Positions 2,841 through 60,597 of a DNA stretch of 64,000 bases are shown here, piece after piece (position 1 is the first letter of the stretch; every line of letters begins with the position of its first letter). This DNA is from Octopus sinensis. Lineage: Eukaryota. Under the pieces are notes generated by a model, which was not told the DNA's origin, made no database searches, and saw only the letters and a list, made by a program, of their open reading frames with translations. The position numbers and the translations under genes were made by a program. Where the stretch lies: assembly GCF_006345805.1 (NCBI RefSeq), contig NC_043014.1:868001-932000 (forward strand), read 5' to 3'.

Positions 2841-2954
2841 TCACTTAAAAAATGATTTATACATCAGCGTTGATCTGCATAAAGATTTGTCTTGTTCCAT
2901 CAAAAATAGCAAATCTCTCAGGTTGACACGTTTGATACGTGGCCGGGACACAAC
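2841..2954 (-). CDS. TAF4: TAF4 exon 14, last coding (VVSRPRIKRVNLRDLLFLMEQDKSLCRSTLMYKSFFK*)
   Basis: ccgcag acceptor; conserved CCTD RI.RVNLRDL; TGA at 2841-2843. Confidence 0.96.
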   Translation of the reverse strand, partial: VVSRPRIKRVNLRDLLFLMEQDKSLCRSTLMYKSFFK

Positions 2955-5205: not shown

Positions 5206-5236
<31 letters not shown>

Positions 5237-11200: not shown

Positions 11201-12914
11201 CTGTAACAAACAAAACCAAAATCATTAAATGATAAGATTGATTCGATGAAATATTAATTACTAACACAGGCACAAAATTTAAGGGGAATGATGTAACTGA
11301 TTAAATTGACCCCAGTATATTACTGATACTGTGTTCTAATGACCCGGCAAGAAGAACAGTAGAATTAGCCCTTTTGATACCAACCTGCCTGAGACCACTC
11401 TGGTTCTGTGATACAAACTTTCGGTTTTAAAAGGATTTAAATCAAAATCTTCCAACAAAATTCTGTGCAAGTTTATTTTCCCAGAAACCGGATAAATAAC
11501 AACAAAGTTACTTTATAAAATTCTTCATTATTTTGAAAATTAATTGAAACAAAGGCGGTGAATCTCATTATGGTAACGAGAGGATTAACTTTGATGAGAT
11601 GTGAAGTCAGAAAATAAAGGACATAAGAAGACAGCACAAGACATTTTGTTTAGTGCTCTACCGATTCTGTTCAATCCAGGGAGATGTTTGTTTTATGTCT
11701 GTAAATAATTAAAGAAATCACAGACAAAGTATGAGACATAGAAAGCAAGTCCTCGTTTTGGGGCTTCGAAGGACAAGCTTTAGTAACATTCAATGTTGAG
11801 ATAAACTGTGTGCAAGGGTTTCAAATCCCAGTTGGCCCTATTTTGCTTGATAAACATCATGGGGAAAGAATGAACACCAGCCGATGCCATAACTGGTTTA
11901 TCCTTAAAAGAAAGACACGAGAAGAAGATAGTTACCTGAGTGGGTTGATGAATGTGTCCACCTGACATAACGCCATGGACCTGAGGCTGGGTGGTCATGC
12001 GATTGGCTGTGGTCACATGAGTCATTCTGTTGTGGGTGTGGCTGTGTACGTTCTGTTTTGTGTGTGTCATAACAGTTGTATTAGGCACCGAACACATGGT
12101 CTGAACCCGGATCACTTCAGGAGGAGGGGGACGCACCCCATCAATGGACATTTTATTCATGTAGAGAGAATGCCTCAACAGAGGTAAACTTTTCTGCAAA
12201 TATACAAAATATATAAATATATAGATATTGTGGGGGGTGGGGGAAAGAAAGAGAGGGACAAACATAGAGTTATATAGGCATGGAGATGGGAAGAAGGATG
12301 TGGGAAGGTGGACAAGGGGATGGACAAACAGAGACAATGGTGAGGTGGTAGGAGTGGACAGACCAGATATACATAGACGAGACACAAAGAAAAGGAACTG
12401 GGAGAGATTTGACCTGTTTTCCATCTCCACTGCTGCCACCATACACACTCACACACACAGATGTCTACGATGGACATTAAGCACCAAACATGACTGCCAA
12501 GAAGGCACAATTCTCCCCTGTACTTAATAAACAGGGGGTCTGAGTCAAGGATTAGATTGCTGGCAAGTTGTAAGACAAGAAAGGGTCCGCTAAAATTCAG
12601 GGGCTTCATGTAATTCATCAAATACAACACAAAAACACACACACACACACAATTGGAAAAAATGTTGTTTGAGAACAGTGAAACTTATACTGTTTCCATT
12701 AAAATGCATTTGTCATATTTTAAGTTTACATACATGTATGGGCATGTGTATGAGTGTGTGTGTGTGTGTATGAGTGTGTGTGTGTGTGTGTATGAGTGTG
12801 TGTACATACACATTCATTTTAGCATGTTTTTGCTAGCAAGACTTGGAATGTTTTTCTTGTCACCAAGTTAGGAACTTTTTATTTCTTCACAGAAAATTTG
12901 AACAAACAACAACA

Positions 12915-12946
<32 letters not shown>

Positions 12947-15900: not shown

Positions 15901-18900
15901 TAAATAAAGAGGAAAATAGGTTCACTTACAATCAGTCCCTGGATGAGCTCACGCACGTTGAAGATTGTTTCAGGACGCTGATTAGAAGCTAATTTCAGCA
16001 GTGTTGCCATGAAATTCTTACATTTCCGAACGTTATCAATCATATTGCTGTTCTGATCTAAAAGTAAAACATTTTATACAAATCAAACACAAAGTCCATG
16101 AAACATTATACAAACACAGACATCTCAAAAAGTAAATAGACCCCCCCCCCACTCATTATACCTTTTTATCTGGGACTTCAAACTGTTAATGTTTTATCAT
16201 TTTCCGTTTCAGGATTACAGAATTTTTCATTGTTTATGGCAACTAGCCATATTGTGAACACCAGAAGCAAACGAGTTGTCTGATTTTCAAAGAGGGTGTA
16301 TTGTGGGTGAATCCGAGGGTGACTCAGCCAGTGTAAGACTGCAGAACATTTTGGGATTCCCCTTGATGCAGTCAACAGAGTGATTGTCCAATCCACCAAC
16401 AAAAGAAAGGGATCAAAAGCATTTTGCTCAGGTCACCCTGGGACCCGCTGACAGGCGTGTTTGGGCTGCCAAATAGATTGGTGGAAATAATCCCTGCTGC
16501 AGGGCAGGTGAGGTTGCAGAGCAATTCCAAAATGAATTGGAGTACCTCTGTACGGCATCTCCATCAACTTGGCTATTATGGCTGGGTAGCTGGAATGGAA
16601 CCTTGCCTTCAACCAGCAAAGATCCAAAGAAGAGATGACAAAGAAATCTTTCAAAAATCATGGAGTCAATTTACTTTTATATGTGTATGTATGAAGGGGT
16701 ATGGTTGAGTGGTTAGGGTATTCGGCTCCAGATTGTAAGATCGTGAGTTCGATTCCTGGTGGTGTGCTGTGTCCTTGAGCAAGACACTTTATTTCCAATC
16801 CACTCAGCTGGCAAAAATGAGTTGTACAAGTAATTCAAAGGGTCAGCCTTATCACACACTGTGTCATGTTAAGGGTACATGTGTCTGTGGAGTACTCGGC
16901 CACATGCACATAAATTTGATAAGCAGGCTGTTCCATTGATTGGATCATCTGGAACCGATGGAGTGCCAGTTACACATGTATAGACGAGCATCTTCTTTCC
17001 TACCTTATTTGGATCAGATGCCATTCATTGAAGCAGGTTTTTCTAAGGCCGGATGCTCTTCCGGCTTCCAAGGAAAGTTACACACACACCCACACACTTC
17101 ACCCCTTTTATATGCATGTACCCATGTACACACACCCACCCATGCCTCTATACATACCCAGTCCTATTTACCCACTTAGACAATAACGAGTACCTTTAGA
17201 GCTGCTATAAATGCATCCCCGCCCCTCCACTCCAATTACCCTTGCGTTGAGAAGCTGCAGGGGAAGATTTGAAAGATAAAAAGGGGCTGCTTCAGTGAAG
17301 AGAGAAGGGGTGAGGTGGACATAAACCAGACTGACCAGTACTAACAGTAAGTATGTACACTGTATGTACCACATGGTTGAGGTAGGAATGGACTTTGTAG
17401 GAAGCTGCTGACCGAGTGACAGAGGCTGCATTCTTCAAGTGGACCATTTGGACAAGTGTAATTGGTAACAAACTATTCTGTTGAGGGTGAAAGCTTAATT
17501 CTGTTGCCCGAGGGAATCAGGGATTTCAGTGTTATTGTAGATATATGATTTATTTTTTCTTCCTCCATTTGAGGAGGAGGACCACTGCCACCACCACCAC
17601 CACGATTTAATGTCCATTATCCCTGCTGTCCTAGGTTGGACGGCTTGACAGGAGCTGGCTTCGGCAGAATGATTGAACCATGCTTCATTGTCTGTTTAGG
17701 CATGGATTTTATGGTTGGATGCTCTTCCTAACACCAACCACCTTACAGAGTGGACTGGATGCTTTTTATGTGGCCCCAGTACCAAGGGCCACTTAAACAC
17801 AAATAATGAAACAGATGGGCAAAGGGTTTAGAGTGGTTAGTATTTCCTTAGCACTAAGTGGGAGGAGTTTCACCCTGGTGGTTCCAGAGAAAGATGCCTT
17901 TATAAGGAAGAAGGAGAAGAGAGCATGACTTCTAGAGTCTCTGCAAACACAGAGAAGTAGTTCCCTACCATTTACTGTTAGTGACTAATTGGAATTGGAA
18001 TAAAAAAGCATTGAGATAAGCCATCTTAGAGGGTTGTCATTTTTATGTTTAGAGATCCACATCATTCTCGCTCACAACATCATAAGCGGAAAGTGTAACC
18101 TCTCGAAAGAGCTGTTCTTCACTCCTGCTCCAGAGCGTCGGCTGCGGGGTCATTCCGAAAAGCTCTATCTGCAACAATTTCATCTCAATCAAAGGAGAGG
18201 GGCTTTCTCCATCTGGGTTGCGAATCCGTGGAATAAGCCGCCGGACGAGATAGTGAAGATGCCGACGACCGCTCGGTTTAAAGTCTCCCTTGACCACAAG
18301 TGGCCTGAACTCTTTACATGAACACCACCCTGTACATAACTCCATGTCCCCCTACATGGCCTTGCTTTTTGCTTTTTGAGACAAAAAATTAACTAACTAA
18401 CATCAAATATTTCCTGCAGAGAAACAGGAGATGAGGATAAAAGACGTTCTCTTACTTGGTAATACATTGCTGGCCTGATTATGTCCGACAGGTATGGTGC
18501 TTGGCATTGTGGTTGTTGAGCCTGTACTGTTTTGAGTGACAGGTGACACCTGTACAGGATTGTGGTTAACTGGGACAGTTTGTCGCAGAACTGTGTGATG
18601 GCTGGACGTAGTCGCTTGTCCTTGCGGTTGCTGGATTGTAAGAATAGTTGGAGTGGAGGTTGGCTGTCGAGGTTGACCTTGATTGCACATTGGCTGAAAT
18701 GCAAAGAAAACAATAATTAAGGATGACAAATCAAAAGGATGGTTACCTGGATAATTAAACAAACATACATACACAGAAGATAAATTTAATGCAGTTGCAC
18801 TAAAGTTTGTAATGTCTATGCTGCAGAAAGTAAACAAAAGTGAATACAGATTATTATTTTCTTAGCAACAACACAAATAAGAAAATTGCTTTGACATATT

Positions 18901-21900
18901 TCATGGCAGGTTAGGGTCAGGGTTACAAGAAGCCTGCTCACTCTTCTCTTACAAACAGCACTTCATAGTAATTACTATTTAAGTCAGTCACAAACCAGTA
19001 ACTCAATTGAAATGGGGTGACTAATTCATATTGCTCATTAGGCAGCATAGATATGGATTAAATGAGGAGATAATCAAGATAAATAAATGAGATAGTTATA
19101 ATTAGCTAAATGTATTACTAACCTCGTCAAAAGGTTTATAATTATCTCATTTACGACAGTTTCCTCCCTTGCCTCACACAAATCACACTTAAACTTATCA
19201 ATGATTCAGTTGGTGGTCGTCCGCAATCTATAATATCTGATTAAACAATTAGTTACCATTTAAAAATGTTTAATTACTGCTTAACTCCTCAATCACCAAT
19301 CAAAGTTGTTTAACTCCAGATAAACCTTTATCCAGCACCTGTCACCGATGTGACAATCCCCTTCTTTATTATTATGCCCACCACCAAGTAATGAGGAGTG
19401 ACAGAGGGATGGGTGTTGGGGGGAACTGATGGGGGGGGAAGGCTTTCAGAATCTCATTTTTGCTGCGATGGAAGAGACTTCTTGAACACAATGAATCTTG
19501 GTCCTTCATCATTTCTCTTGCGAGGCTCAGCATCTTGAGATCAGCCTTCACTATGTCATCTTATGTCGTCTTATGTTTTCCCAGGGTCTCCCTCTGCCAC
19601 AGGTCTTGATCATATTGAGTACAATGTTGAATGAAAGATGTCCGCTTCATTTTACTCTCATTAACAAAGAACACACACACACAAAAGGACTTACCTTGAC
19701 ATTTTGCAGTTTCCCTGGTAAAACAGTAGTATTGGTAGATGTCTGTGGTTGTAGAACACTCGACTGACTCGCATGAACCAAAACTAATTGGCCTTGTTCG
19801 TTTTTCACCAATACGGTGCCGGGTTGAAGCTGAATGCTTGTGGGTAAAGTAATGGCATTCTAGAAGGAAGAACAAACGACAAAACATTAGAGATGGTTTC
19901 GGCTTTTGGCCTCATTACTTTCGATGAGATACAATATGTTGCATAATAAAACTATAATCTACACGGTGGTACAAATACGAACAACAAAGCTATCAGAATA
20001 TTGATGCTCGTTTATATTTCATCTCAGTTGATTAAAGAAGCTAAAACAATGAACTGAATTGCTTTAAATGCACAACATTTGAACCAATAATCAGCTGCTG
20101 CAGCTTAGAGGAGGCTTTTGTTCATGGATACCTGTTTGTCTTCTCCCCAAAGGTACTAGCCTTGGCAAGGTACCTTTAGGGAGAAGCTTTCTAGGGGCAG
20201 AAACCATGATTAAAGGTGGCTTTAATCCATGGATCTAATGTAATCTTAATAAGGGTGATCCAAGATGAGTATATTAAACTAAACATGTCGGCCATGACCC
20301 CAGGATAATTCTTTGAGACAGAATTAAGATAAAGACACAAGTTTATAGCAAAGGTACAAATCCCTTTTAATGGTCTGATTAGGGCAGTATAATTATGGTG
20401 GTATAATTAGTGTAGTTTAATTATGGTGGGATGAATATGGTAAATATAAGAATATAAATCTTATATAACTGTATAATTCTTCTGACTGAACAAGAGAGAA
20501 CATAAATGCCAAAACAATTATTGTATGAATTAATTAGGCAATTATTTGTGTAAAAATGAAATTATAACCAGAATTAGTTTCATTAGTATTTACATGAACC
20601 CTCATAGCTGCTCTTTCATTCAACTGGTGAAACTGTTCAGGGAGCAACTGCCAGGAAAGGAGGAGTAATTATTCTACACTCTCAACAGCAATGTGTATGT
20701 TTATACACACACGCGTGTGTGTGTGCATTTTGACCCCATCTGAGGATGTGTTTAGTAGGATTATATACACTGCATTTATAAATTGTATGTATGAATTACA
20801 TTTATTGTGACATCACTAATTAATTACCAAATACATCATAGTCCTCCAGGCAATAGCAGAGGAATTCAAGACAGCTTGCCCCTGGAAGCTCCTCTATGCT
20901 GATGACCTGGCCCTCATAGCAGAATCACTACCAGAACTAGAAGAAACTTCAAGTGTGGAAGCAAGGTTTAGAATCGAAGGACCTTAGAGTCAATGTTACA
21001 AAAACCAAAGAGGTGCAGCAACATCAAAAGAAGATTAACCGGGAAGATAGCTTTCACGTGCAGCAGATGCACAGGGGCAATACACACCTTAATACTCAGA
21101 AAATAGACTCCATCACATGCTAGGAGGAGAAACCAGAAGTAGTTGATAACTTCTGCTACCTAGGTGACCAAGTCTGTAGAGGGGGCTGGATGCTCAAAGA
21201 GTGTTACCACTAGAATAAGAATAGCCTGGGCAAAGTTCAGAAAGCTTTTACCCCTACTGGTGACAAAGGGCCTCTCATACAGACTGAAAGGTAGATTGTA
21301 TGATGCATGTGTGCGAACTGCCATGCTTCATGGCAGTGAAACATGGGCCAAGACTGCTGAAGACATGCGTAGGCTCAAAAGAAATGAAGCTAGCATGATC
21401 TGCTGGATGTGTAATGTCAGTGTGCACACACAACAGAGTATAAGCACCCTGAGAGAAATAAAAGAGTTGCTCTTGAATCTTTCATCCAGACCAGACGACC
21501 ACTCCATCTGAGCCTTTGCTTTAACACAAGAGCTTCTATACTTTCACACCAAGAGCTTTCTAATATTTCAAGGTCACTGATGCGGTCCTCCCACTGAATG
21601 CCACATCTGATGGAAACGTTCCAGTTGTTTAAGGTATTGATATGTAACCCACGTCTCGTAGGCAGAAAGAAGAGAAAAGAGCACACATGCCTTGTACACC
21701 TTTATCTTTGTCTTTCTGCATATGTCTTGCTGACTCCAGAAGCACCTTTCTAGCCTCCCAAAAGCATCACTTGCTTTCTAATTCTGTATGGAATTTCATC
21801 ATCCAAATTGCTATATCTATTAGTGCTTCGCAGGTAGACAAACTGATCAACTACATCAAGTCGTTTATCATTCACATAGATATTTGGTACACTATACTGC

Positions 21901-37969: not shown

Positions 37970-38016
<47 letters not shown>

Positions 38017-40227
38017 CACACTGAAATACGAACTGATGTAGTGAAATAAGTGTTTGCTGTAGTATTTTGATGTTGTTTAACCTGTTTTCTGGCAGTCACA
38101 CTTTCGGACTTTAATGTCAGGCTAAACTTAAAACTTGGATTCACTCTGTCAAAATACTTCAGCATCTTTCACAAACAGCGAATAAGAATCTTTCAGAGAT
38201 GAGAGGTTTTCGATCAGTAGTCATAACAATATCGATAATGATGATGATGATGGTGATGAAGATAAGTGTAAAATCGATCCCGCGAATATGTGAAAATGTT
38301 CTTGAATAACATCTGAGGCTGGGTGGAATATTTGAATATTCGAAAAGATAAAGATTGGAGCAGATCGAGTGGAACTGATGTGAGTCGGGGATATTAGGGG
38401 GAGGAGATGTTCTGGGTCCTGTTTTGATAATGGCATTGGTGTGTGTGTGTAAAGGAACAAGGAACAGTGGCAATTACTGTGTGTATACGCGTATCTGTAT
38501 ATATGTGTGTGTGTGTGTAAGGGAACAAGGAATAGCAATAATCTGAACAATAATAATCTTCAAAGAGAAGAAGGAGAGGAGCAAAAGATGAGGTGGGGAG
38601 GGCGATAAAGAGAGCAACAAGTAAACAAATGGTACTTTACCGTTCCTCCTGGTCGTGGGGCGATGTTGATCTGTTGTGATGGTTGTGAAGTATTTATACG
38701 AACCGCCCCTACACGGTTGTTGGTCGTTTTGCCAAGACTTCCAGCATTTACGGTTAGAGCTCGAGATGTGTGGATATTCTGATTGTTCAGAGTTACAATT
38801 CTCATTTGGGTGGCATTATTGGTGAGTATTTGAGGTTGAACCATGCTGACTTGAGGTTGGGTTCGTGAAACTGTGATGACATTAGGGTTGACTTGTTGAG
38901 ACAAACCCTTCACTATGTGTACGTTCTGTAGATTCTGCTGTGTTGAGGTGACAACAGACGAGGTGACACGGGCCATCGTGTCCCTAGAACAGGTTATCTC
39001 TGTTTTAGGTGATGCTGTGGTGATATTACGTGTTGTATCCTTAATAACAAAGTGGCCAGTACTTTGATCGGGTTTCATAATTGGTGTTGAAGTAACTGGT
39101 GGAGTCGTGGTGGTGGTAGTTGTAATCTTCTGTCCTCCAGTTTTGTCCTGCCTCTGGTCAATCTGCTCGCGGACAGTCATTCGATTAGCAGTTTGCATTG
39201 ACTTAGTCTGTTGGACAGTCATATGTGGGACCATCAGAGGTTTCCGTTCGGCGGCAATTGTAGCCAGATTATAAATAGCACTGTTTGTTGTTTGGTTCGT
39301 TTGGTTGGTGACCACGCCGGAGGTAGCAGTGTTTTTCTGCACAGCTGTTGCCGCTCCATTACTGTCTGTCGTTACAACTTGATGCTGGACAGGTTGTGGT
39401 TGAGTTGGTCCCAGTGGCCTCGCAATTGGATGTACATAGGGAACATTTGGGTTCGAGTTGTTGGTGTTTGCAACCGACGATGTTTGAGTAATGATTCGAA
39501 TTGTCTGTGTATTTCCGATTTTGCCGCTGTTGGTTGGGATTTGCACAGTATTTGGAGTGTTAACATTCAGTAGAGAGACACCACTTGCTCCTGGTACGGT
39601 AGTAGCTCCACAAGCAGGTGACCCAGTGCCAACTACACCACCGGCTCCAGTGCCCGTTACTGTCGCGTTTGTAGGACTTAGGATGGAACTGATGCCGATA
39701 ATTTGGGTATCCATAGGTGCTTTGGAAATTGGTGCTGTGTTTTTGTTCATTTGGGGTCCGCCTGCTGTTACCAAGGGGATGCCCTTCTGTCCTTGACTGA
39801 CAGCCTGGATAGATGCGAATGGGGCACTGACGGTGGACGAAGCGGGTTGCGATGACGCTGCCACAGTCACGACGGTGGGGGCCGTGGCAGGACCGATTCC
39901 CAGGTTTGCTCCGACACACGATGTAGCAGTGTTGTTGATGTGATTGGTGCCAGTCGCTCCGATACCAGTTGTATTTCCAGTGCTTTTCGTGGCACCACTT
40001 CCACCAACATTGCTATTGCTAGTAGCACCAGAATTCCCGTTGCTCCCAACACGGTCCGTCGTCGCAGGAGCAGTAATGGGAACAACTACACTGTCCGATA
40101 CATCCTGCGACGACTCCTTGTGGGTAGGCGAGGCCAGCCTCGACTCTAGGCTCCCAACTAAGGCACTTACTTCGTTCTCGTCCACCTCAGACGACAACAA
40201 TTCCTCGATTGAGTTGGTGGCCGCCAT
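2841..40227 (-). CDS. TAF4: TFIID subunit 4 (TAF4), gene span; 14 coding exons, 3492 nt, about 1163 aa
   Basis: N-terminus MAATNSIEELLSSEVDENEVSALVGSLESRLA, TAFH domain, DDDDINDVA..GVNL + histone fold, and C-terminal RPRIKRVNLRDL all match the TAF4 family. All 13 introns are GT-AG and the phases join into one open frame ending in TGA. Confidence 0.97.
3851..4325 (-). mobile_element. RTE-LINE 3' UTR repeat with (GAT)n tail and several GTGCCnnnGGCAC monomers
   Basis: Family motif ggatgcccttcctaacgccaacc; about 10 similar copies in the window. Confidence 0.75.
5335..5391 (-). CDS. TAF4: TAF4 exon 13 (TGSSTSLTNGGVSSSSVRP)
   Basis: ttgcag / gtgagt, 57 nt, phase 0-0; S/G-rich linker, weak homology support. 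Confidence 0.75.
6374..6484 (-). CDS. TAF4: TAF4 exon 12 (LQLAEMEEMRQREANITALAAIGPRKKRKTEAGDSNQ)
   Basis: tctcag / gtact, 111 nt; AN.TALAAIGPRKKRK motif. Confidence 0.96.
6615..6671 (-). CDS. TAF4: TAF4 exon 11 (SRSKHEDPEQLKLKQKAKE)
   Basis: ttacag / gtaag, 57 nt; EDPEQL.LKQKAKE motif. Confidence 0.95.
6724..7106 (-). mobile_element. Full-length tRNA-derived SINE (tRNA head, CORE-like segment, internal microsatellite, CR1-type tail)
   Basis: Head gcaggagtggctgtgtggtaag...ggttccgggttcagtccc (A/B-box-like); near-identical copy at 52098-52468. Confidence 0.8.
7447..7602 (-). mobile_element. Degenerate 5' half of the same tRNA/CORE-like SINE
   Basis: agacacttgctcaaggtgcc...gattgaacctgaaaccatgtg; similar heads at about 29655-29800, 33905-34055 and 34535-34670. 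Confidence 0.65.
8300..8560 (+). mobile_element. RTE-clade LINE ORF C-terminal remnant
   Basis: LLQIERLQLRCYGQEIRM...RGQARRRWWD resembles RTE QLRW.GH..RM...RGRP..RW.D. Confidence 0.6.
9265..9390 (-). CDS. TAF4: TAF4 exon 10 (MDSRYEVKNDVRSILKHFEELERLEKKRHEEQEREMLLRVAK)
   Basis: tccaag / gtttgt, 126 nt, phase 0-0. Confidence 0.94.
9550..9680 (-). CDS. TAF4: TAF4 exon 9, histone fold (KKYGVEEVPSDVANIVSHATQERLRDFIEKLS)
   Basis: acacag / gtaag, 131 nt, phase 1-0. Confidence 0.95.
10609..10778 (-). CDS. TAF4: TAF4 exon 8 (DDDDINDVATMGGVNLSEE...CKDECFL)
   Basis: tttcag / gtaag, 170 nt, phase 2-1; start of conserved region II. Confidence 0.96.
10941..11200 (-). CDS. TAF4: TAF4 exon 7 (TIIKQVCPGG...KRKYESL)
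   Basis: ttacag / gtaag, 260 nt, phase 0-2. Confidence 0.9.
11365..11588. mobile_element. MITE with TTAA-CCCT-type termini (piggyBac-like)
   Basis: ttagcccttttgatacc ... ggtaacgagaggattaa, imperfect terminal inverted repeats. Confidence 0.5.
11936..12193 (-). CDS. TAF4: TAF4 exon 6 (KSLPLLRHSL...HQPTQ)
   Basis: ttgcag / gtaac, 258 nt, phase 0-0; end of TAFH helix. Confidence 0.92.
13142..13231 (-). CDS. TAF4: TAF4 exon 5, TAFH part 2 (DGKVDPESFTEKLQIELQSSPQPCLVPFLK)
   Basis: ttctag / gtaag, 90 nt, phase 0-0; SSPQP.LVPFLK motif. Confidence 0.95.
13693..14108 (+). mobile_element. CR1-clade LINE 3' end
   Basis: NTRGHIYKVRKQHSSHDFRKHFFTLRVAEAWNKLP motif, followed by 3' UTR and (ATT)n tail. 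Confidence 0.85.
14166..14383. repeat. 218-bp foldback (long inverted repeat), probably MITE-like
   Basis: Arms gtaaagattgtttgccaac...gatctgt and acagatc...gttggcaaacaaactttac are near-perfect reverse complements around a loop of about 16 nt. Confidence 0.85.
14460..14667. mobile_element. MITE, TTAA-flanked, CCCTTTAGC-type termini
   Basis: ttaatcctttatcattcag ... aacgctaaagggtttaa; second copy at 45905-46092. Confidence 0.65.
14750..15032 (+). mobile_element. CR1-clade LINE 3' end (second family)
   Basis: GHSEKLYLRRFHLNRRRGAFSV.V..PWNKLPDEIV; (TTAAC)n tail; near-identical longer copy at 18035-18400. Confidence 0.85.
15930..16057 (-). CDS. TAF4: TAF4 exon 4, TAFH/NHR1 domain part 1 (DNVRKCKNFMATLLKLASNQRPETIFNVRELIQGLI)
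   Basis: ttttag / gtaagt, 128 nt, phase 1-0; classic TAFH motif. Confidence 0.95.
16260..16655 (+). mobile_element. Tc1-like transposase N-terminal remnant
   Basis: Frames give ELSDFQRGCIVG and HLHQLGYYGWVA...QPAKIQRR, typical of the Tc1 HTH region; disrupted. Confidence 0.65.
16716..16960 (+). mobile_element. tRNA-derived SINE (different family)
   Basis: ggttgagtggttaggg...gagttcgattcc (A/B box) then tgtgtccttgagcaagacacttt. Confidence 0.65.
18035..18400 (+). mobile_element. CR1-clade LINE 3' end, same family as 14750-15032
   Basis: LRGHSEKLYLQQFHLNQRRGAFSIWVANPWNK; (TAAC)n tail immediately beside TAF4 exon 3. Confidence 0.85.
18456..18693 (-). CDS. TAF4: TAF4 exon 3 (PMCNQGQPRQ...SNVLP)
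   Basis: tttcag acceptor, A|gtaag donor, 238 nt, phase 0-1, open Q/T/P-rich frame. Confidence 0.88.
19430..19640 (-). mobile_element. RTE LINE ORF C-terminal remnant
   Basis: TCGRGRP...DIVKADLKMLSLAREMMKDQD; similar to 29155-29350. Confidence 0.6.
19695..19859 (-). CDS. TAF4: TAF4 exon 2 (NAITLPTSIQLQPGTVLVKNEQGQLVLVH...QNVK)
   Basis: ttctag acceptor, AAG|gtaag donor, 165 nt, phase 0-0; resembles the vertebrate LPPGMVLVRSENGQL segment. Confidence 0.9.
20845..21462 (+). mobile_element. RTE-clade LINE reverse-transcriptase fragment
   Basis: PWKLLYADDLALIAES; RIRIAWAKFRKLLPLL...YDACVRTAMLHGSETW. Confidence 0.9.
21490..24270 (-). mobile_element. RTE (BovB-like) LINE, near-complete degenerate APE-RT ORF
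   Basis: IGCWNLRT, VSVYAPTM, DFNARVG, WHILDYILVR (APE); NYRGISLLS, GVKRGDILAPALF, MYADDC (RT); many frameshifts and stops. Confidence 0.93.
24400..26990 (-). mobile_element. CR1-clade LINE, degenerate APE-RT ORF with 3' tail
   Basis: ALIETHL, MGDFNFP (APE); QHGFRPGRSCLTQLL, YLDFAKAFDKV, GVPQGTVLGPLLF, YADNTK (RT); tail cagcatggccacagctctcagctgaaac. Confidence 0.93.
27262..28000 (+). mobile_element. 5'-truncated CR1 LINE, same family as 24400-26990, opposite orientation
   Basis: SNDASFQVH; IYIWKILEGLVPNFGI; CNSLGFRGLQLFNILPK; tail cagcatggccgcagc. Confidence 0.9.
28398..28800 (-). mobile_element. RTE-LINE 3' UTR repeat with (GAT)n tail, long copy reaching the ORF end
   Basis: Family motifs plus gctgtgcttgaggagac (minus, 28780-28796), matching the RTE ORF terminus at 29318-29334. 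Confidence 0.75.
29155..29350 (+). mobile_element. RTE LINE ORF C-terminus
   Basis: MNKDSCMKRCQSLNVKGTCGRGKPRKTWDKVV. Confidence 0.8.
29994..30809 (+). repeat. Exact tandem duplication of a 408-bp unit (RTE 3' UTR copy + flanking microsatellites)
   Basis: Identical ORF translations at 30148 and 30556; gtgcctcactg at 30025 and 30433. Confidence 0.92.
32083..32974 (-). mobile_element. Internally deleted mariner element with TIRs of about 40 bp, nested in the element above
   Basis: gtctgattaataagtatctggactgttgccatagtaa vs ttactatggcaacagtccggatacttattgatcaga; ISYGSVQSIITEDLCMRCVSAKFVPKLLS. Confidence 0.85.
32975..33240 (-). mobile_element. RTE-LINE 3' UTR repeat copy
   Basis: cgtttaacatccgctttccatgctagcatgggttgg...; abuts the mariner TIR. 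Confidence 0.75.
33637..33856 (+). mobile_element. tRNA-derived SINE with Deu/Nin-like central domain
   Basis: ggcgagctggcagaatcgttagc head; gagttcaaattcc B box; tttcatcctttcggggtcg..aaattaag.accag core. Confidence 0.75.
34192..34525 (-). mobile_element. Degenerate RTE-LINE 3' UTR repeat copy
   Basis: catcatcattcaatgcccatgctggcatggg...ggatgcctttcctaacgccaacc. Confidence 0.65.
35040..35196 (+). mobile_element. Deu/Nin-like SINE fragment (CpGs decayed)
   Basis: gagctcaaattccaccaaggttgaccttacctttcatccttttggggtcaataaaataagtaccag. Confidence 0.7.
38641..40227 (-). CDS. TAF4: TAF4 coding exon 1 (529 aa; conserved N-terminal motif, then T/S/G/N/Q-rich low-complexity region)
   Basis: ORF 38560..40227; donor ACG|GTAAAG at 38640, phase 0. 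Confidence 0.93.
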
Positions 40228-40525
40228 TTCGTTTGCTTCGTCGATGGACGACTAAAGAGCGCATGCGCAGTGACCCGGTTGAACCCTGAGATTTGTGTAT
40301 AAAAGACATCGAGCGCCACCTTGCGGAGAGTACAGTGTTACATTGTCGCCATCTTGAGAGATATTTTAGTTTGGGGAGAAGAAAGTCGACTGCTTTGAGC
40401 TCTCTCTCTCTCGAACCGCAACACCACTGGACCCACGACCACCCTCTTTTAATAGCGTTGGGCTCAACGGACAGGCAGACTAAAATTTGTTGGAGAAAAC
40501 TGCGAAAGCGAACCGTGAGAGAACC
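40228..40525. promoter_or_regulatory. Bidirectional promoter / 5' UTRs between TAF4 and LSM14 (298 bp between ATGs)
   Basis: Divergent ATGs at 40227 (-) and 40526 (+). GCGCATGCGC 40259-40268, TATAAAAG 40298-40305, CTCF-like CCGCAAGGTGGCGCT (minus) 40312-40326, CGCCATCTT 40347-40355; CpG-rich. Confidence 0.85.
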
Positions 40526-40649
40526 ATGAGTGGAGGAGGTATTCCGTATCTGGGCAGCAAGATAAGCCTGATATCGAAGGCTGAGATACGTTATGAAGGC
40601 ATTCTCTACACCATCGACCCCCACGAATCCACTGTTGCTCTCGCCAAAG
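40526..40649 (+). CDS. LSM14: LSM14 exon 1 ([41 protein letters not shown])
   Basis: accATGA start, AAAG|gtaac donor, 124 nt, phase 1. Confidence 0.96.
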
Positions 40650-41309
40650 GTAACCCAACACTCCTTTCTTTACTCTACACTTCACTATCAAACACCCATT
40701 GAAGAATCCAACCCAAATACTGGCCATCCCCTCCGACTGGTCTCTTTATTTCTTTGGCGCCGTGAGGAATGGTTTCCCCTTTTTCACAATTTTACTTTGT
40801 TATTTATGTTTGTCTTCACTTCCGCCTTATCCATGTGTCTCGCTGAATTAACCTTCCAATTTCCCCATTTTGCATGCGTGGTGGTGGCCAGCGAATTAAA
40901 CATCCCGCGTTATGTGGAGTCAGGAATTAAACCTCCATTTTACCGCGTTATACATGTGTCGAGGTGGCCAGGCATTTCGCCTCCACTCTACCCGCTTCTA
41001 TATATGTGTATATATGTGTGTGTGTGTGTATATATATATGTGTGTGTGTGTGTATATATATATGTGTGTGGTGTGTATATATATATGTGTGTGTGTGTGT
41101 ATATTATATATGTGTGTGTGTGTGTATATATATATATGTGTGTGTGTGTGTATATATATATATGTGTGTGTGTGTGTATATATATATATGTGTGTGTGTG
41201 TGTATATATATATGTGTGTGTGTGTGTATATATATATGTGTGTGTGTGTGTATATATATATATGTGTGTGAGTGTGTGTGTGCTTGCTCCTCCACTTTAC
41301 CCGCTTCTA

Positions 41310-41350
<41 letters not shown>

Positions 41351-44300
41351 TGTGTGTGTGTGTGTTTGCTCCTCCGCTTTACCACGTTAACACATGGGTG
41401 TGTGGTGCTTGTGAAATATTTGACTCCCATGTATTGCATGTGGGGGTAAGAAGCGAACTCCCCTCCACACACACACGTGTGTCTGATGGTTAGAGTCAAC
41501 CTCCACCTCACCGAGGTAGACACACATCTCTGGTTCATATTGAAAATAAACCCCCCCTCGTTTCCTCGCGGTTTTTTCTAATGACGAAAACAGCTTTCGG
41601 TTTTATCTTTCCCCAGTAAAATACCTTCACTCGAAATGTTGGATATTCTCTTAGTTTTGCAACATTTGTCAATAAACTCTTCGACCAAACTGTCCTATTT
41701 TCAGTTCCACCCTTTTTTAAAATAGTTTTTCTTTAAAAAGCCAGTTCCCTTTAATTTCTTCAGCTTCTGTCAAAATGTAGCGAACTTTTTTAGAACTGAG
41801 AAAAACCTCGCAATTTCTGTTTTTTTCTCGCTTCCCTCGTTTAACCTGAATGAGAAACTTGTTATATAAATGTCTAATTATATTTAAAAGGCAATTCTTT
41901 ATAAAACAGCAAAAACTGAGCTTTGACTCATTCAAATAAAAGTGTATTTGTGTCTTCTTCCCAGCCACAAACCCGCCATTCACATAGTGAAAGTGTCCTC
42001 GTTCTTTCCCTCTTGTTGACATCTTCTATTGATAAAACGTTGACATGTCATCCGACTATTTATTATTATTTTTATTATTATTTCAGTTTTTCTCTTTGCT
42101 TTCAGCCATGACTAAGCTTAATTGAGCTATTTCACTTTACCAAGACAATGTTTCGTACTTTGCACTTCTCTTCTAGAATTTCCATTTCTCTAACAAAAAA
42201 CCCCAAAAATACTGGAAATAAAATATAACTAAAAAACGAGTTATTTTTATGTCCTATCAACTTCCTCCCGTCTGTATCTCTTTCTCTCTCGCTGTCCATT
42301 TGCTGTGTCTGATTGTCCACGTATGCTGGTTCTATATTCATTGACCAATGCATAATAACTCGTGTCCCAGCCAAGCTTTCCATAAGCTGCCAAAGTCTTT
42401 CATTTTCCTCGAATTTCCTAATAATTGTCTTTTTAATTCCCCCGCCATTTTTATATTGCTTTTTTTAAATCAAGCTCCGACCAAGATTGTGTCTCGCTAA
42501 TTTAGCCGACAACTTGCAGGTATTTTATTTGCCAGGTAATAATATGGCATTCAGAACGTTCCAGGTCGCTTAAAATGTTCAACTTATTTACATTGTGAAA
42601 ATGTCCTCTTCGTTCCTCCTCAAATAGTTCTTTTTCCTGCGCTTTTAATTCATAAAAATAATTTCGTTAAACTCTTTTAGTATTACATTAAACGCCTGCC
42701 TTTGCTTTTAAATGAACTTTTATGTCTATAATATACACACGTATTTAGTTGGCACCTGTCCCGAAAAGCTTTTAAATGTTCACATTTTATGGCGGTTAAA
42801 TGTAAAGATGTTTTCTCCGTTTCATTTTTAAGATTTTAATTTTTAAACATTTTTTTTTTTTTTTTAAACAGTAAGATCTTTTGGTACTGAAGATCGTCCT
42901 ACCGACCGTCCTGTTGCCCCAAGAGATGAAGTTTTTGAATATATAATATTCAGAGGTAGTGACATTAAAGACATCCATGTCTGTCAACCTCCCAAGCCAC
43001 AGCCTTTGCAAGGACTACCGCAAGACCCTGCTATTGTGAAGGTAGGCAGTCTTACCGCGTCACCCTTTTAATTCCTATATTATTTCCATTTCAATTGACG
43101 ATACAGTAACCTCGAAATCTTTTTCTTCTCAGTCATCCCAGCCAGTGACCACCACTTCGTCTTATCCTCAACAACAGCAGCAGCAGCAACAACAGCAGCA
43201 GCCTCAGCACACTTACAGCGGTCAATCTTATCAACCTTTTGGAGGAGCTCAGCTTTATGGCGGTCAGTATCTTCATTCTGGTGGCCAGCATTCCTATCAT
43301 GGTTCTAGCCAATTTTCTCTTCCAGGTAACACCTATTGTGAATGTCTTTCATTATACGCTTAGCTTACTGGAGGAATATCAACAACTGCTGTTTTTAAAA
43401 AAGCGGGCCTTATAACATAACCTAAGGTGTAGCAACTAATTTCTTTTGCCGTTCTAATTAGCAGGAGGCTATCCTAATCAAACTTTTGAAATTGCTTTTA
43501 AATTACTGATTCTCTTGATAGGTTTTATGCTGGTTTCCCAGTGCAGCAATTAAGACCTGCAAAAGTCTTTCTTGGAGCAGTTTCCATTGAGCTGACCCAC
43601 TTCGTACTTTGAAGAGTTTCCCTCATTACTCTTTAGATTTGCATCTTTCACTGATTCTTTTATAATTAGTTAATTGTACGATTTTCTAATCAGCTAAATA
43701 TTTAAATTCCATTTATTTTCAAACTTTTCTCCTCTCTTGCTAAATTTTAACATTTTGATTTTACTGAATTTTTCTTGATATTGTTTTTGAAACCCCAATT
43801 GGATTTGGACCTGAATGTTGGCGTTTGTCAGGTTCCTTTATTCGCAGTTATGCCCGTCATACAACTCGGGACCAAGGCATTCAAGTAGATCCCCAGCAAA
43901 TTAGGAAATCTGGTAAATTGAAGCATTCAGAATCTCACATCACTAATCTTACCTAACTTCTAATCAGTGTGCAGGTGACACACAGGTGAACGACCATGGG
44001 AAATGCCAGTTCTACCAGATTCTGTTGGTTTTTTTTGTAACTTCTAACCATTGTCCCTTTCATTATGGATTTCTTAAATTTTTAACCTGACGTACTAAAA
44101 TGGTTGACTAATTAAAAAAATTTTTTCTTAAATCTTAGTTTACATATAACATGCATACTAATATTCAAATATTAACCATTTAAAAATTTTTCTTACATTT
44201 TTTGAATCTTAATATCTAATCCAACTTTTGGCTTTTGCAAAAGTTCCTGGCTTGAATGGTTGCTTGAGTTTGAAATTCTTCTCTTATAGTTTCTCGTGGT

Positions 44301-47300
44301 CCTACCCCACCTGTTGGGCGCAAATCCCCAACAACTGATCAAGGAACTCAGATCAATGTGGATGACAAGATGCAGCAGCAGCATCAGCATCAGCACCAGC
44401 ACCAGCAGATGTCTCCCACGGATCGTCGAGACAAACGCTACAATAATCAGAAAGATCAGCAAGGGAACCGGACTACAACATTCACTCGTGGACGAGGGGG
44501 TAGAGGTATGTTGCTGCTCTCATTCTCTAATCCCCTTTTTTCCCCTTTGTTCTTTGTCTTTGAAATATTCTGATGTACTTAATGTATTTTGGTAGGGGTT
44601 CCAAGAGGCCGACCCCGAGGAATGTCTCGAGGTATGCCAAGAGGCAGAGGGAACTCCAGACAACCTTCAGAACCTCTCAAATTTGAGAATGACTATGATT
44701 TTGAGAGTGCCAATGCTGAATTTGAAGAAGTGGAGAAGGAGCTGAAGAAGTTAACACTGAGTAAGTAGGATTATTGCTGGGGTTTTTTTCTTTTGTAATA
44801 GGGGTGGGTTATTATTGTTTTTGGAGTAACAGTAATTTAAGTATGAACTTGCCTTACCCACTCTGTCCAATCCTCAGAACCACTTATGTTCACCTTCCAT
44901 TTAACTGATTGGCTTTAGGATGGGCACCCAGCCATAGAAACTGTGCCAAAGCTGATACTGGCATTTGGCACAGCCCTGCCTTGTCAAATTGTTCAGCCCT
45001 TGAAGGATAATTTAAACTTGGGATATTTTTAGGCACATTGACTTGTTCTTGGGTGTTTTGTCTTTTATGAAATTAAATTACTGAATCTGATTGAATTTCC
45101 ACATCCCTATCACCCCAAATGTTGTTGTGCTTTTGCTGCCCTGACTGAGTTTGTCTTTTGACTTTGAAATCTTTTCAGATGAAAAGAATCCCACTCCTAT
45201 TGTGAATGGAGAAAAACCAGAAACTGAAGAGGAACCAGAAGTTCCAAAGAAAGATGTGAAGAAGGATGAAGAAACGGTGTACTATGATAAAACCAAATCT
45301 TTCTTTGATAACATCAGCTGTGAGGCAACTGAGCGTGAACATGGGTGAGGAGATTTTCCAGTTTACATCATAATGATCTTCCGTTTTACTGTTTGCCAAT
45401 ATAGTCTACAATTGCAGGAATTATTCTGTTTAATCTTTGGCAGTTCTTGTACTAAAATTTGAAGTTGTTTGCTTTAGGGTTAGCTGTTTTAATTAGAAAT
45501 TGTGAGCTTTGTAACTACATTTTTAAATTTAGAGATTTTAGTAAAAAAAAAAAAAATTGCTTAACTATGGAATACAACTAAAGATTAAGACTATGATATA
45601 CTTTGAAATGTTTTTGTGATAAAATTTGTTTGTCAGTTGGACATGAATTTTGCCCAAATCCAATACGATGATTGAATAAATTTTGGTATTTGAATATATT
45701 CTTAGTATTGGAACCAGTTATGGAAGTTATGCGACTTCCTAATTTTTGTCTTCTGAATAGAATTAAATTTTTAAATCCTTTTGAAAATCCTGCAGATATT
45801 TTCCTTCCAATATGAACTTCCTAATTTTCAACATTAAACTGAACCTTTGTCTTCACTCATTGTTTAGAAATGATCTACTTTTAATAATTTCTAAATGTAG
45901 GCCTTGAACCCTTTCTCATTCGGATTACTCTGTCAAATTTGATATTCACATTGATTTAACTTTAGGATTTTGATGCAATTGTGTTTTTAGGACATTGTTG
46001 GGTAGGTGTAGGAGTCCGGATTTTGACAATTTGCACATAGAACAGGTAAACTATTTGGGCTGGATATGGCTGGCCTAAATGCTAAAGAGTTAGTTGTGCC
46101 AGGTGAGATGTTCATTTGTGAAATGGGCCGTAAGCATTTTTGAAAGTCAACACAAAGAATTATATATTTGGCACTTTATTTCAGCACCAACTTGGTCCCT
46201 GCCTGTTTAATTTTCTGGATTTTCATTTTTAAAAAAATAGGATTTAGAACTGCGATATTTTTGTAAATATTTGCATTTGATATCAAAAAAATTATGGTGT
46301 ACTTTTCCATTTGAAATTTAAATTTTTATATTTGTAACTTATTTTCTGAATTTAAACAGCCTTGCAATTAAAAATTAAAGTATTAGAATATCGAAAAACG
46401 TTTGGAACTAATTTCTCTCTGATTGTGAATTGGTTCAATCTTGTTTTAAAACTACATTAAATGCAAATTTGTGCAAATTATGAAGACAGTTATGGAATTT
46501 GAAACTGATTTTAATTATTAAGCAAGGTTTTTTTTTCTCTCCCAGTCGTGTAAATAGAACAAGTTGGCGAGAAGAACGGAAACTTAATGCAGAAACTTTT
46601 GGAGTGTCAGAACGTTATCGTGGTAGGGGCAGAGGCATGAGAGGTCGAGGTGGTTTCCGAGGTCGAAGGGGGAGAGGTAAATATCAGTTTTTTGCCCAGT
46701 GGCTTTTTCAGCTTGTTAATAATGCACTGTATCTGTGCAGACTAATTGATTGGCCATGTTTCTGTCTTCTTTGGCTTTCCATTGAAATAAAATCAATTTT
46801 CGGCCTGTGCTGTACCTACCATTTAAGATGAAATGTAAAATAGTTAACCTTATTTTTAAAAATTCCATGAATTGTAATAACCATTTCAATGTCTGCTGTC
46901 AACATTAAGATAAAAATATTTTTGTTGCAGCTCCTTTTTATCCATCAGGTAGAGGAATGAACCGTGGTAATTACAGAGGAAACTTCCGACGAAATTCCGG
47001 AAATACTGGTTGGGGTGATTCTAGTTGGGCAGATAACCAACACAATGAAGCAAACAACGTAAACGGTGAAAAAGCTCTGAACAAGGTAAACCCCCTTCCT
47101 TTGTCTTCCCCGTTGAGGACTTAAGCTAAATTGAATTTCAATGATTGTTGGATGCGGCAGAGTTTTGTGATTCAGGAATTCAGAAGATCATGGACTGTTT
47201 TCAGCTTAATTCTGAGTCTTGTCAATCTGTAGCTGACCACTGCTTTGTCATTGTGTCATAAATAGTATCTTTTTTGTTTCTTGTAAACTTAATGACCAGA

Positions 47301-60445: not shown

Positions 60446-60597
60446 CCGTATTTTAACGTGTATAAGGAACCCCCTAATTTGGGGGGGGGGGGGTTAACAT
60501 TTGGAAAAAAGACTTCGTAAGGGATTATAAGAAACTCCCGTATTTTTTTAACCTAATTTTTGACAAAAACGGGTTCCTTATACGTGTTAAAATATGG
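60446..60597. mobile_element. 152-bp MITE, TcMar-Tc2-like termini, TA target duplication
   Basis: TA|CCGTATTTTAACGTGTATAAGGAACCC ... GGGTTCCTTATACGTGTTAAAATATGG|TA. Confidence 0.8.

Follow-up and report, generated by a model that had tools for sequence, protein, structure and literature searches.

A conserved head-to-head TAF4–LSM14 gene pair in Octopus sinensis, with a candidate bidirectional promoter of less than 300 nt

The 64,000-nt stretch of Octopus sinensis DNA analysed here (the window) holds two whole housekeeping genes arranged head to head: TAF4, encoding a subunit of TFIID, at roughly 2.8–40.2 kb, and LSM14, encoding an mRNP repressor of the Scd6/CAR-1/Tral/RAP55 type, from 40.5 to about 46.6 kb. 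Read from the sequence, their first coding exons, whose outer limits are 38641 and 40649, diverge from start codons with exactly 298 nt between them (40228–40525), and the open reading frames and GT donors bear out the original observation of a minus-strand TAF4 and a plus-strand LSM14 with ATGs 298 bp apart. Pfam matches and homologues confirm both gene identities. The two proteins are not known to be linked physically or through a pathway. The coding features are listed below; beyond the first exons, coordinates are HSP limits, from tblastn for TAF4 (not exact splice sites) and from tblastx to loci L001–L003 with a lead tblastn for LSM14.

38641..40227, minus strand: TAF4 first coding exon (ORF and GT donor from sequence; 529 codons)
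2844..19859, minus strand: remaining TAF4 coding exons
19859-19695 and 18609-18553, minus strand: TAF4 exon pieces
16055-15930 and 13231-c.13142, minus strand: TAF4 TAFH pieces
c.12202-11927 and 11203-11108, minus strand: TAF4 exon pieces
10783-10604, 9681-c.9550, c.9390-9265, 6671-6612, 6487-6374 and 2960-2844, minus strand: TAF4 C-terminal domain
40526..40649, plus strand: LSM14 first coding exon (ATG at 40526; 41 codons, then phase 1)
42871..46606, plus strand: further LSM14 coding exons
42871-43044, plus strand: LSM14 LSm domain, second half
c.44598-44759, plus strand: LSM14 FDF motif
c.45280-45324, plus strand: LSM14 FFD box
c.46547-46606, plus strand: LSM14 TFG box

The 298-nt spacing would be meaningless if the 529-codon reading frame were not the first exon of TAF4 or belonged to another gene. 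This exon is of low complexity and rich in S/T/N/Q, and gave no match when searched alone against Pfam. About 18.8 kb of intron with retrotransposon remains stands between it and the next TAF4 exon, and in Amphiura and Daphnia its equivalent has been annotated as a gene of its own. Against such a mis-assignment, which we regard as very improbable, the N-terminal motif MAATNSIEELLSSEVDENEVSALVGSLESRLASP, conserved from human to cephalopod, begins exactly at the ATG (40227, minus strand), an in-frame stop lies 8 codons upstream (40252–40254), and the phase-0 GT donor (minus-strand positions 38640–38639) gives an exon 1–exon 2 join identical to that of the Sepia protein, with exon 1 ending in ...PRPGGT and exon 2 opening with NAITLP.... 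Moreover, exon 2 follows after about 0.5 kb in L002 and L003 and about 0.2 kb in L007. The exon 1 N-terminus aligns with that of human TAF4 in PDB (E 0.031), and the exon shares 58–62% identity with its counterpart in the annotated Sepia (Acanthosepion) pharaonis TAF4, where that exon 1 is joined to TAFH and TAF4 domains. The downstream same-strand exons were located by tblastn with Sepia TAF4 (P0132), a human TAF4 query serving as a lead only; joined, they match TAFH (PF07531, E 2.7e-26) and TAF4 (PF05236, E 7e-77), and the piece at 2960-2844 ends with the last codon before the stop. The spliced protein matches oyster and gastropod TAF4 at E of about 1e-134. On the other strand, LSM14 exon 1, with its GT donor at 40650, matches the Pfam LSM14 family (PF12701) at E 4e-13 alone and at E 1.9e-32 together with exon 2, and has 370 homologues, the best 120 at 85–97% identity; FDF is also matched in the LSM14 exons (Pfam, E 9e-6).

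Between the two start codons lies a compact region (GC 0.49) with a CpG observed/expected ratio of 1.10 against a window median of 0.37, set within a broader island in which the ratio is 0.63–0.97 in every 500-nt window against the same window-wide median. A multi-species alignment of the inter-ATG region (alignment A1) delineates the following elements.

38001..41250: CpG-undepleted island, covering both first exons and the intergenic region
40228..40525: inter-ATG region, 298 nt, which must hold both 5′UTRs and the candidate bidirectional promoter
40259..40268: Box A, palindrome GCGCATGCGC; single occurrence in 64 kb, 0 expected
40287..40291, plus strand: Box B position, TGAGA; TGGGA(A) in most other loci of alignment A1
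40298..40305, plus strand: TATA-like element TATAAAAG facing LSM14 (sequence and alignment A1), of putative function
40313..40321, plus strand: Box C, GCGCCACCT (AGGTGGCGC on the TAF4 sense strand), conserved in alignment A1
40347..40355, plus strand: Box D, CGCCATCTT (AAGATGGCG on the TAF4 sense strand); CGCCAT(C/T)TT in alignment A1
40439..40445, plus strand: Box E, CCACCCT (alignment A1, columns c.257-277); CCATCCT in other loci

From the TAF4 side, the motifs run NRF1-like GCGCATGCG, TGGGA, GCGCCAYCT and YY1-like CGCCATYTT. The names denote consensus resemblance only: we take Box A to fit the NRF1/Ewg/P3A2-type consensus, Box B to resemble the core of a ZNF143/Staf site, Box C to resemble the core of a CTCF site (YY1-like in its ATGG variants) and Box D to be YY1-like. 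Box A stands 31–34 nt from the TAF4 ATG, with at most one mismatch, in all 14 short-gap loci compared, whereas Box B, the weakest of the boxes, occurs as TGGGA at 56–60 nt in 8 of the 14. Box C is matched twice in the window, where 0.13 matches would be expected. Boxes A, C and D stand in that order (chain A<C<D) in 10/14 loci, compared with 0/7000 shuffles and 0/14 reverse complements. Box E, rich in pyrimidines and some 80 nt ahead of the LSM14 ATG, probably lies in the LSM14 5′UTR, and in alignment A1 the window shares the TATA-like element with no locus but the other cephalopod one. Conservation is uneven along the gap: the TAF4-proximal 129 nt (40228–40356) can be aligned by blastn to the decapodiform locus L001, and the half nearer to LSM14 shows little conservation even between the cephalopod loci (alignment A1, blastn). 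Colinear similarity between the two cephalopod lineages was not found in TAF4 intron 1 by blastn or tblastx. As far as sequence can indicate, the ordered motif series fits a shared bidirectional promoter.

The same divergent adjacency occurs at 22 further loci, one from a decapodiform cephalopod and the rest on invertebrate contigs, with 191–298 nt between start codons. The gap is 281 nt in the decapodiform locus and 220, 237, 236, 229, 191, 192 and about 222 nt among L002–L013; JGI contigs found through LSM14 alone have gaps of 193–210 nt, with wider ones in L051 (811 nt) and L053 (1167 nt). Twelve JGI loci extend 3.4 kb or more upstream of LSM14, and 10 of them show TAF4; in the L020/L040 cluster and in L088, TAF4 was not found at up to 4 kb from LSM14. 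A large group of contigs has, 0.5–1.6 kb from LSM14 and on the opposite strand, the exon-2 motif together with a TAF4 exon 1 that has diverged. A stretch of L007 no longer than 10 kb, beside LSM14, encodes the TAF4 N-terminus, exon 2, TAFH and the C-terminal domain in colinear order on the same strand, and the domain identities are about level with those between molluscan classes. Beyond these contigs, the brittle star Amphiura filiformis has a true TAF4 exon 1 (ATG at 9012, plus strand) divergent from LSM14 (ATG at about 4016, minus strand) across about 5 kb without an intervening gene. In this gap Box C alone of the boxes is recognisable, its 9-mer lying in the same orientation 104 nt upstream of the TAF4 ATG. 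Daphnia, where the LSM14 partner is absent around TAF4, has lost the pair, which is thus not universal.

As general background, human TAF4 and LSM14B are divergent and tens of kb apart rather than within the <1 kb of the co-regulated conserved ancestral microsyntenic pairs (CAMPs) considered below; the human and mouse genes, tens of kb apart with separate CpG islands, differ in this from the octopus gap. Of the original claim that the human genes are divergent neighbours, the adjacency is borne out by the published gene order. The human order is CDH4–TAF4–LSM14B–PSMA7–SS18L1, and the same orthologues are immediate protein-coding neighbours at human 20q13.33 and mouse 2qH4 (PMC3193386). A PSMA7-like gene was not found in the window or the compared loci. 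A 49-genome survey (Robert et al. 2022) likewise joins Taf4 (OG0001971) and LSM14A (OG0002432), in ‘Bilateria novel’ block 3767 on scaffold 219 of Lottia gigantea, a block assigned to the bilaterian node (PMC8851819, supplement 4). That block is multi-gene (with ASTE1, SNRPB and others) and defined by orthogroups, listed without orientation or distance, and the survey does not discuss the TAF4–LSM14 pair or its promoter (PMC8851819).

Could the cephalopod and vertebrate arrangements have arisen independently? Any two genomes share thousands of orthologues, and by chance alone a few neighbouring pairs should be common to both (of the order of one or two by our own estimate); Daphnia lacks this one. 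But the same divergent pair is found in two cephalopod lineages, at least ten further invertebrate sequence lineages and the brittle star, the pair recurs in the Lottia block and in human, and closely examined loci that had been fetched through one gene alone all carried the other. The adjacency is not due to chance, because it recurs in every related locus examined closely, and convergence is effectively refuted. The predicted antiquity of the pair is thereby upheld, and comparison of orthologue gene order shows it kept in invertebrate contigs, Amphiura filiformis and the Lottia block.

We think it likely that the pair descends from a divergent 5′–5′ arrangement in the bilaterian ancestor, and that the gap of <300 nt serves as one bidirectional promoter. 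In the octopus, both first exons would flank a single compact, CpG-rich regulatory region, with NRF1-like, ZNF143-like, CTCF/YY1-like and YY1-like elements interleaved between two back-to-back transcription starts. Nearly any rearrangement breakpoint in such a gap would damage one or both genes, which may be how the tight pair has outlasted even coleoid genome reorganisation; in lineages with widened gaps (brittle star, human), the neighbours persist without a shared core promoter. The arrangement resembles the co-regulated class of CAMPs, likewise non-paralogous neighbours kept across metazoan phyla, 5′–5′ and unchanged in orientation, very closely spaced and with sequence conservation in the gap, features predicted for pairs under shared cis-regulation (Irimia et al. 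2012, PMC3514665). Enrichment for 5′–5′ orientation, short gaps and co-expression is general among conserved ancestral pairs (PMC3514665). The type example, HSPD1–HSPE1 (Hsp60/Hsp10), is likewise arranged head to head with <1 kb between the genes, is deeply conserved and is transcribed from one bidirectional promoter (PMC3514665). Its products, however, are partners in one complex, and it is tightly linked in human, whereas the tight spacing of TAF4–LSM14 is lost in deuterostomes.

The suggestion that the pair is held by a shared promoter thus stands in part. At gaps of 190–300 nt it is plausible, because the boxes recur there in a conserved order. It can account neither for retention in the brittle star, with about 5 kb between the genes and a single motif left, nor for retention in mammals: the mouse Taf4 CpG island is described as bidirectional with the lncRNA 4921531C22Rik, not with Lsm14b (bioRxiv 10.1101/780551). 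A shared promoter therefore cannot be what keeps the two genes together in deuterostomes. In the echinoderm and in mammals, TAF4 and LSM14 no longer share a promoter.

These observations also accord with passive retention, in which independent promoters merely abut and the pair survives because a 200–300-nt gap is a tiny breakpoint target where any break kills a promoter. On this reading co-regulation is not selected for, and TFIID and mRNP repression are not functionally coupled. The neighbours stay together without the motif series where the gap has widened, as in Amphiura, and gaps are also wide in L051, L053 and human; mouse Taf4 sits at a CpG island of its own. The A–D block may belong to TAF4 alone, because it hugs the TAF4 side and Box A keeps a fixed distance from the TAF4 ATG, and the LSM14-proximal half is the poorly conserved one. 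Spacing held at 191–298 nt in coleoids and at least ten other lineages nevertheless suggests constraint on the spacing itself, and conserved metazoan microsyntenies as a class are significantly co-expressed in Euprymna and octopus (PMC9023564). Sequence alone cannot separate passive retention from a shared promoter, because both predict the same pattern; we hold passive retention to be a real possibility, somewhat short of an even chance.

Alternatively, the conservation of a CTCF-like box in the gap could point to insulation rather than coupling, with Box C (AGRTGGCGC) as a CTCF-type boundary between differently regulated neighbours. Counted by eye, Box C fits 11–14 of 15 positions of the CCASYAGRKGGCRSY consensus, and of all the boxes it alone recurs in Amphiura, where its orientation is unchanged and its distance from the TAF4 ATG similar. 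We consider this unlikely: the same bases fit YY1 (ATGGCG) in most loci, a boundary within a 200-nt nucleosome-free region is mechanistically doubtful, and few insulator elements are predicted between co-regulated pairs (PMC3514665).

Whatever maintains it, the TAF4–LSM14 pair is genuine, old and conserved, yet ordinary: a well-documented addition of modest significance to a known class. The argument that its survival is notable given coleoid rearrangement proved weak: Euprymna keeps 275 metazoan microsyntenies against 216 in scallop (PMC9023564), and retention of the pair is unsurprising because coleoids keep about as many ancient microsyntenies as scallop.

TAF4 and LSM14 stand head to head in the window, their start codons diverging across exactly 298 nt (40228–40525), as the original prediction had read directly from the sequence with TAF4 on the minus and LSM14 on the plus strand; the outer exon ends lie at 38641 and 40649. 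The two genes comprise the following coding features.

Coding features of TAF4 and LSM14 in the window
19859–2844, minus strand: other TAF4 exons, from searches with a human lead and Sepia TAF4
38641–40227, minus strand: TAF4 exon 1, ATG at 40227, GT donor beyond 38641; 529 codons, rich in S, T, N and Q
40526–40649, plus strand: LSM14 exon 1, ATG at 40526, 41 codons, then a GT donor
near 44.7, 45.3 and 46.6 kb, plus strand: exons with the LSM14 FDF, FFD and TFG motifs, FDF detected by Pfam and the motifs read in the exons

The TAF4 start codon is preceded by an in-frame stop eight codons upstream. A Pfam search with exon 1 alone returned no domain; its first 35 residues (…SSEVDENEVSALVGSLESRLAS…) match the N terminus of human TAF4 in the PDB (E = 0.031), and over its full length it shares 58–62% identity with the first exon of TAF4 from Sepia (Acanthosepion) pharaonis (CAE1302587.1). 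The downstream exons, traced with a human TAF4 sequence as a lead only and then with the Sepia protein, encode the TAFH (NHR1) domain (Pfam PF07531, E = 2.7e-26, 91.8 bits, cut-off 27; exons 16055–15930 and 13231–13142) and the C-terminal TAF4 family domain, which contains the histone-fold region (PF05236, E = 7e-77, 259 bits, cut-off 33). The spliced product matches TAF4 from Magallana, Batillaria and Nucella with E values of 1e-126 to 1e-134. Because the downstream exons lie on the same strand as exon 1 and the exon 1–exon 2 junction (…PRPGGT followed by NAITLP…) is identical to that of the Sepia protein, we place TAF4 at roughly 2.8–40.2 kb, its first intron taking up about 18.8 kb. Exon 1 and the domain exons are also combined in the Sepia gene model and colinear in the anonymous locus L007, and the N-terminal motif is common to human TAF4. 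These points support a single transcript, and a mis-assigned TAF4 start is very unlikely. Intron 1 contains two decayed non-LTR retrotransposon copies (21700–26950, minus strand), each interrupted by stops, with ORF fragments matching reverse transcriptase (RVT_1, E = 9e-11 and 2e-21) and AP-endonuclease (Exo_endo_phos and Exo_endo_phos_2).

LSM14 belongs to the Scd6/CAR-1/Tral/RAP55 family. Its exon 1 encodes the first half of the N-terminal Sm domain of Scd6 type (Pfam LSM14, E = 4e-13), and joining it to exon 2 (42871–43044) extends the match to positions 1–74 of 75 in PF12701 (E = 1.9e-32). The FDF motif scores just above threshold (PF09532, E = 8.8e-6, 27.0 bits, cut-off 26.1). The introns and 3′ region of LSM14 hold several short non-coding blocks that are retained between the window (40500–48620) and the decapodiform cephalopod locus L001 (1–9750), at 70–84% identity over 77–215 nt (for example, window 43120–43311, 43807–43921 and 47335–47535). 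In three JGI contigs (L024, L041 and L042; Ga02103xx), LSM14 exon 1 runs directly into exon 2, and the phase-1 site that an intron occupies in cephalopods is uninterrupted; TAF4 still adjoins LSM14 in L024 and L042, indicating intron loss in that lineage.

To follow the pair across lineages, loci were retrieved with one gene at a time: TAF4 exon 1 recovered L001, L002/L003, L004, L005, L006 and L011–L013, and LSM14 exon 1 recovered L007 and L008–L010. Whichever gene served as the query, the partner was present and divergent in all of these loci, with ATG-to-ATG gaps of 281, 220, 237, 236, 229, about 222, 191 and 192 nt. Exon 1 of L001 is 84% identical to that of Sepia, versus about 60% for the window, which puts the window in a coleoid lineage outside the Sepia clade, putatively an octopod. 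In L007, a stretch of 10 kb adjoining LSM14 holds, in colinear order, the TAF4 N terminus, exon 2 and the TAFH and C-terminal exons; its TAF4 domains are 72–75% identical to those of cephalopods, oyster and a gastropod, about as expected between molluscan classes, and 60–67% identical to those of non-molluscs, which fits a non-cephalopod mollusc but falls short of proof.

An alignment of LSM14 exon 1, used to scan metagenome contigs from JGI, yielded 80 further loci. In ten of these, which form seven sequence clusters, the N-terminal motif of TAF4 lies upstream on the other strand, across gaps of 193–210 nt and, at the long end, 811 and 1167 nt. In one large group of related, near-identical contigs, TAF4 exon 1 has diverged, and the gene shows itself by a long opposite-strand ORF and by the exon-2 motif 0.5–1.6 kb away; an initial count of TAF4 upstream in only 6 of 41 JGI loci proved to be an artefact of this diverged N terminus. 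Where at least 3.4 kb is available upstream of LSM14, TAF4 is seen in 10 of 12 JGI loci; the L020/L040 cluster and L088 have no TAF4 within 4 kb of LSM14. One contig, L051 (MDSQ01076228.1, 589–1401), encodes a vertebrate-like TAF4 N terminus (…FSEVDEKAVSDLVGSLESQLA…) divergent from LSM14 across a gap of only 811 nt, and its LSM14 exon 1 differs from human LSM14A by a single extra glycine. This contig is a hint that a tight pair survives in some vertebrate or near-vertebrate lineage.

Among named species, the brittle star Amphiura filiformis (GCA_039555335.1) has an annotated LSM14 on the minus strand (ATG at about 4016) and the true TAF4 exon 1 on the plus strand from 9012 (MAGTTSIEDILSSEVDENALSALIGSLES…), annotated as a separate gene of 247 residues; the two are divergent across about 5 kb, with no gene between them. 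In Daphnia pulex, no LSM14 lies within 10 kb of TAF4, a metaxin-like gene occupies the upstream position on the same strand, and the pair is lost. For human, the original prediction had described TAF4 and LSM14B as divergent neighbours, on strands that we take to be minus and plus, respectively. The neighbourhood itself was borne out by a paper on 20q13.33 deletions, which gives the order CDH4, TAF4, LSM14B, PSMA7, SS18L1 (PMC3193386). Whereas PSMA7 belongs to the human LSM14B neighbourhood, a search with a PSMA7 sequence as a lead found no PSMA7-like gene beside LSM14 in the window or in L001–L015. In the mouse, the Taf4 CpG island is described as a bidirectional promoter with the lncRNA 4921531C22Rik, and Lsm14b has a separate island (bioRxiv 10.1101/780551). 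In the gastropod Lottia gigantea, Taf4 and LSM14A fall in one ‘Bilateria novel’ block of a 49-genome synteny survey (PMC8851819, supplement 4).

Adjacent orthologues thus occur in both protostomes and deuterostomes (cephalopods, anonymous invertebrates and Amphiura here, human and Lottia from the literature), and the orientation is divergent in every locus that we read. Taken together, the loci and named species make the adjacency at least as old as the protostome–deuterostome ancestor, which upholds the proposal of an ancient microsynteny. Chance adjacency is effectively excluded.

The gap itself is CpG-rich, with a CpG observed/expected ratio of 1.10, compared with 0.63–0.97 over 38.0–41.25 kb and a window median of 0.37. 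From a multi-species alignment of nine lineages and a census of 14 short-gap loci, we defined a series of short motifs, boxes A–E, which are listed below with one cephalopod-specific element.

Short motifs in the gap, in order from the TAF4 ATG to LSM14
40259–40268: box A, GCGCATGCG(C), sole copy in 64 kb with 0 expected
40287–40291: box B, TGGGA(A), TGAGA in the window; 56–60 nt from the TAF4 ATG in 8 of 14 loci
40298–40305: TATAAAAG, towards LSM14, cephalopod-specific
40313–40321: box C, GCGCCAYCT
40347–40355: box D, CGCCAT(C/T)TT
40439–40445: box E, CCAYCCT, pyrimidine-rich, ahead of the LSM14 ATG

Box A recurs with at most one mismatch 31–34 nt from the TAF4 ATG in all 14 loci, and the ordered chain A, C, D is found in 10 of 14, compared with none of 7000 shuffles and none of the 14 reverse complements. 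Judged by resemblance to consensus sequences, the motifs are of NRF1, YY1 and ZNF143 type: we take box A to be an NRF1/Ewg-type palindrome, box B a ZNF143/Staf core, box C a CTCF-core or YY1-like site and box D a YY1 site. The 129 nt of the gap nearest TAF4 still align between the two cephalopod lineages and the LSM14-proximal half does not, except immediately before the ATG; TAF4 intron 1 has no colinear similarity between the window and L001 by blastn or tblastx. In the 5-kb gap of Amphiura, box C alone of the series is recognizable, in unchanged orientation 104 nt upstream of the TAF4 ATG. In non-cephalopod loci (L004 9764–10000 and relatives), the stretch from the TAF4 ATG to box A holds a near-perfect palindrome (TCGCAAATTTGCGA) about 10–27 nt from the ATG; at this position cephalopods carry another short inverted repeat (GTCGATGGACGAC), and either could form a hairpin in the 5′ UTR or bind a dimer. 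The CpG-rich region is flanked on both sides, at a distance of a few hundred bases, by long compound (TG)n(TA)n microsatellites.

Compound (TG)n(TA)n microsatellites
37400–38030 and 38430–38530: TAF4 intron 1
40990–41370: LSM14 intron 1

The first coding exons of two essential, broadly expressed genes flank a conserved, CpG-rich stretch of less than 300 nt with motifs at fixed positions. With start codons 298 nt apart, the transcription starts would be closer still, barring an upstream non-coding exon. The gap probably acts as one bidirectional promoter, or as two interleaved core promoters sharing a nucleosome-free region; breakpoints anywhere within it would then be deleterious, holding the pair together even through the reorganization of coleoid genomes. 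Judged from sequence, a shared promoter is plausible in the tight-gap lineages. The main rival is passive retention of abutting yet independent promoters: boxes A–D cluster at the TAF4 side and could serve TAF4 alone, and the brittle star and mammals keep the pair without a shared core promoter. Sequence cannot separate a bidirectional promoter from passive retention. The conserved CTCF-like box could also provide insulation between the two genes. A bolder version of the shared promoter, which we consider unlikely, would make the gap of at most 300 nt a single cis-regulatory module from the early bilaterian (or at least the early lophotrochozoan), with the order of its motifs and their exact spacing to the base (A, NRF1-like, at 31–34 nt from the TAF4 ATG, then ZNF143-like, CTCF/YY1-like and YY1-like sites) frozen for hundreds of millions of years; it would tie TFIID-subunit dosage to that of a maternal-mRNA repressor, in the germline for instance. 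If true, this would rank the module with the few cases in which non-coding architecture at the promoter level can be traced between invertebrate classes or phyla.

In its 5′–5′ arrangement, kept orientation, short gap and conserved intergenic sequence, TAF4–LSM14 matches the co-regulated class of conserved ancestral microsyntenic pairs (Irimia et al. 2012, PMC3514665), of which HSPD1–HSPE1 is a textbook member. Our literature search found no paper on TAF4–LSM14 synteny by name, and the Schmidbaur 2022 supplements name neither gene; the two are already catalogued together in a bilaterian block (PMC8851819). The original prediction held that retention would be notable given coleoid rearrangement, which is a weak argument: Euprymna retains 275 metazoan microsyntenies versus 216 in a scallop, and as a class these blocks show co-expression (PMC9023564). 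As coleoids hold a normal number of ancient microsyntenies, the picture of cephalopod genome evolution is unchanged. Claims of special significance for the pair are overstated. TAF4–LSM14 is rather a cleanly documented addition to the deeply conserved head-to-head gene pairs. Its unusual feature, and the most interesting residue of the finding, is the position-fixed motif series, alignable base by base over many invertebrate lineages, which makes the pair a convenient test case for whether such genes are kept through shared promoter elements or because the gap is too tiny to break. Tight-gap lineages (cephalopods and anonymous invertebrates) and expanded-gap lineages (brittle star and vertebrates) offer an informative contrast.

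Public annotations of Amphiura, Daphnia and Sepia either detach or mis-model the first exon of TAF4, which is of low complexity. It is called as a separate domainless gene of 247 residues in Amphiura (L014, 9012–9755) and of 426 residues in Daphnia (L015, 8434–9859), so the annotated TAF4 proteins of both species lack the true N terminus. In the 1642-residue Sepia model (CAE1302587.1), the TAFH domain is separated from the C-terminal domain by some 480 residues of SPLFL/LVRCF repeats (c. 880–1360), which have no counterpart in the window and are probably a translated tandem repeat wrongly taken as an exon. The LSM14 neighbour and the SEVDE..LVGSLES motif can aid in locating the TAF4 first exon.

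Across the window, neither an Rfam nor a tRNA scan gave a hit. A second CpG-undepleted stretch (53750–59500, CpG observed/expected 1.0–1.45) contains no recognizable gene; ORF fragments at 58040–58518 resemble by eye the C terminus of a mariner-type transposase (…PPYSPDLAPADFHLFPK…), and a Pfam search gave no match. Two families of dispersed repeats have near-identical ORF translations (…DLAVFLQLDALPNANHS.SVVG.FY.PP.Q… and …RRHLPK.PRSGTEP.TMWL…) and are presumably SINE or other transposon copies.

Dispersed repeats in the window
28458–28817, plus strand; 32993–33274, plus strand; 60528–60887, minus strand
also 6817–7191, plus strand; 53233–53592, plus strand
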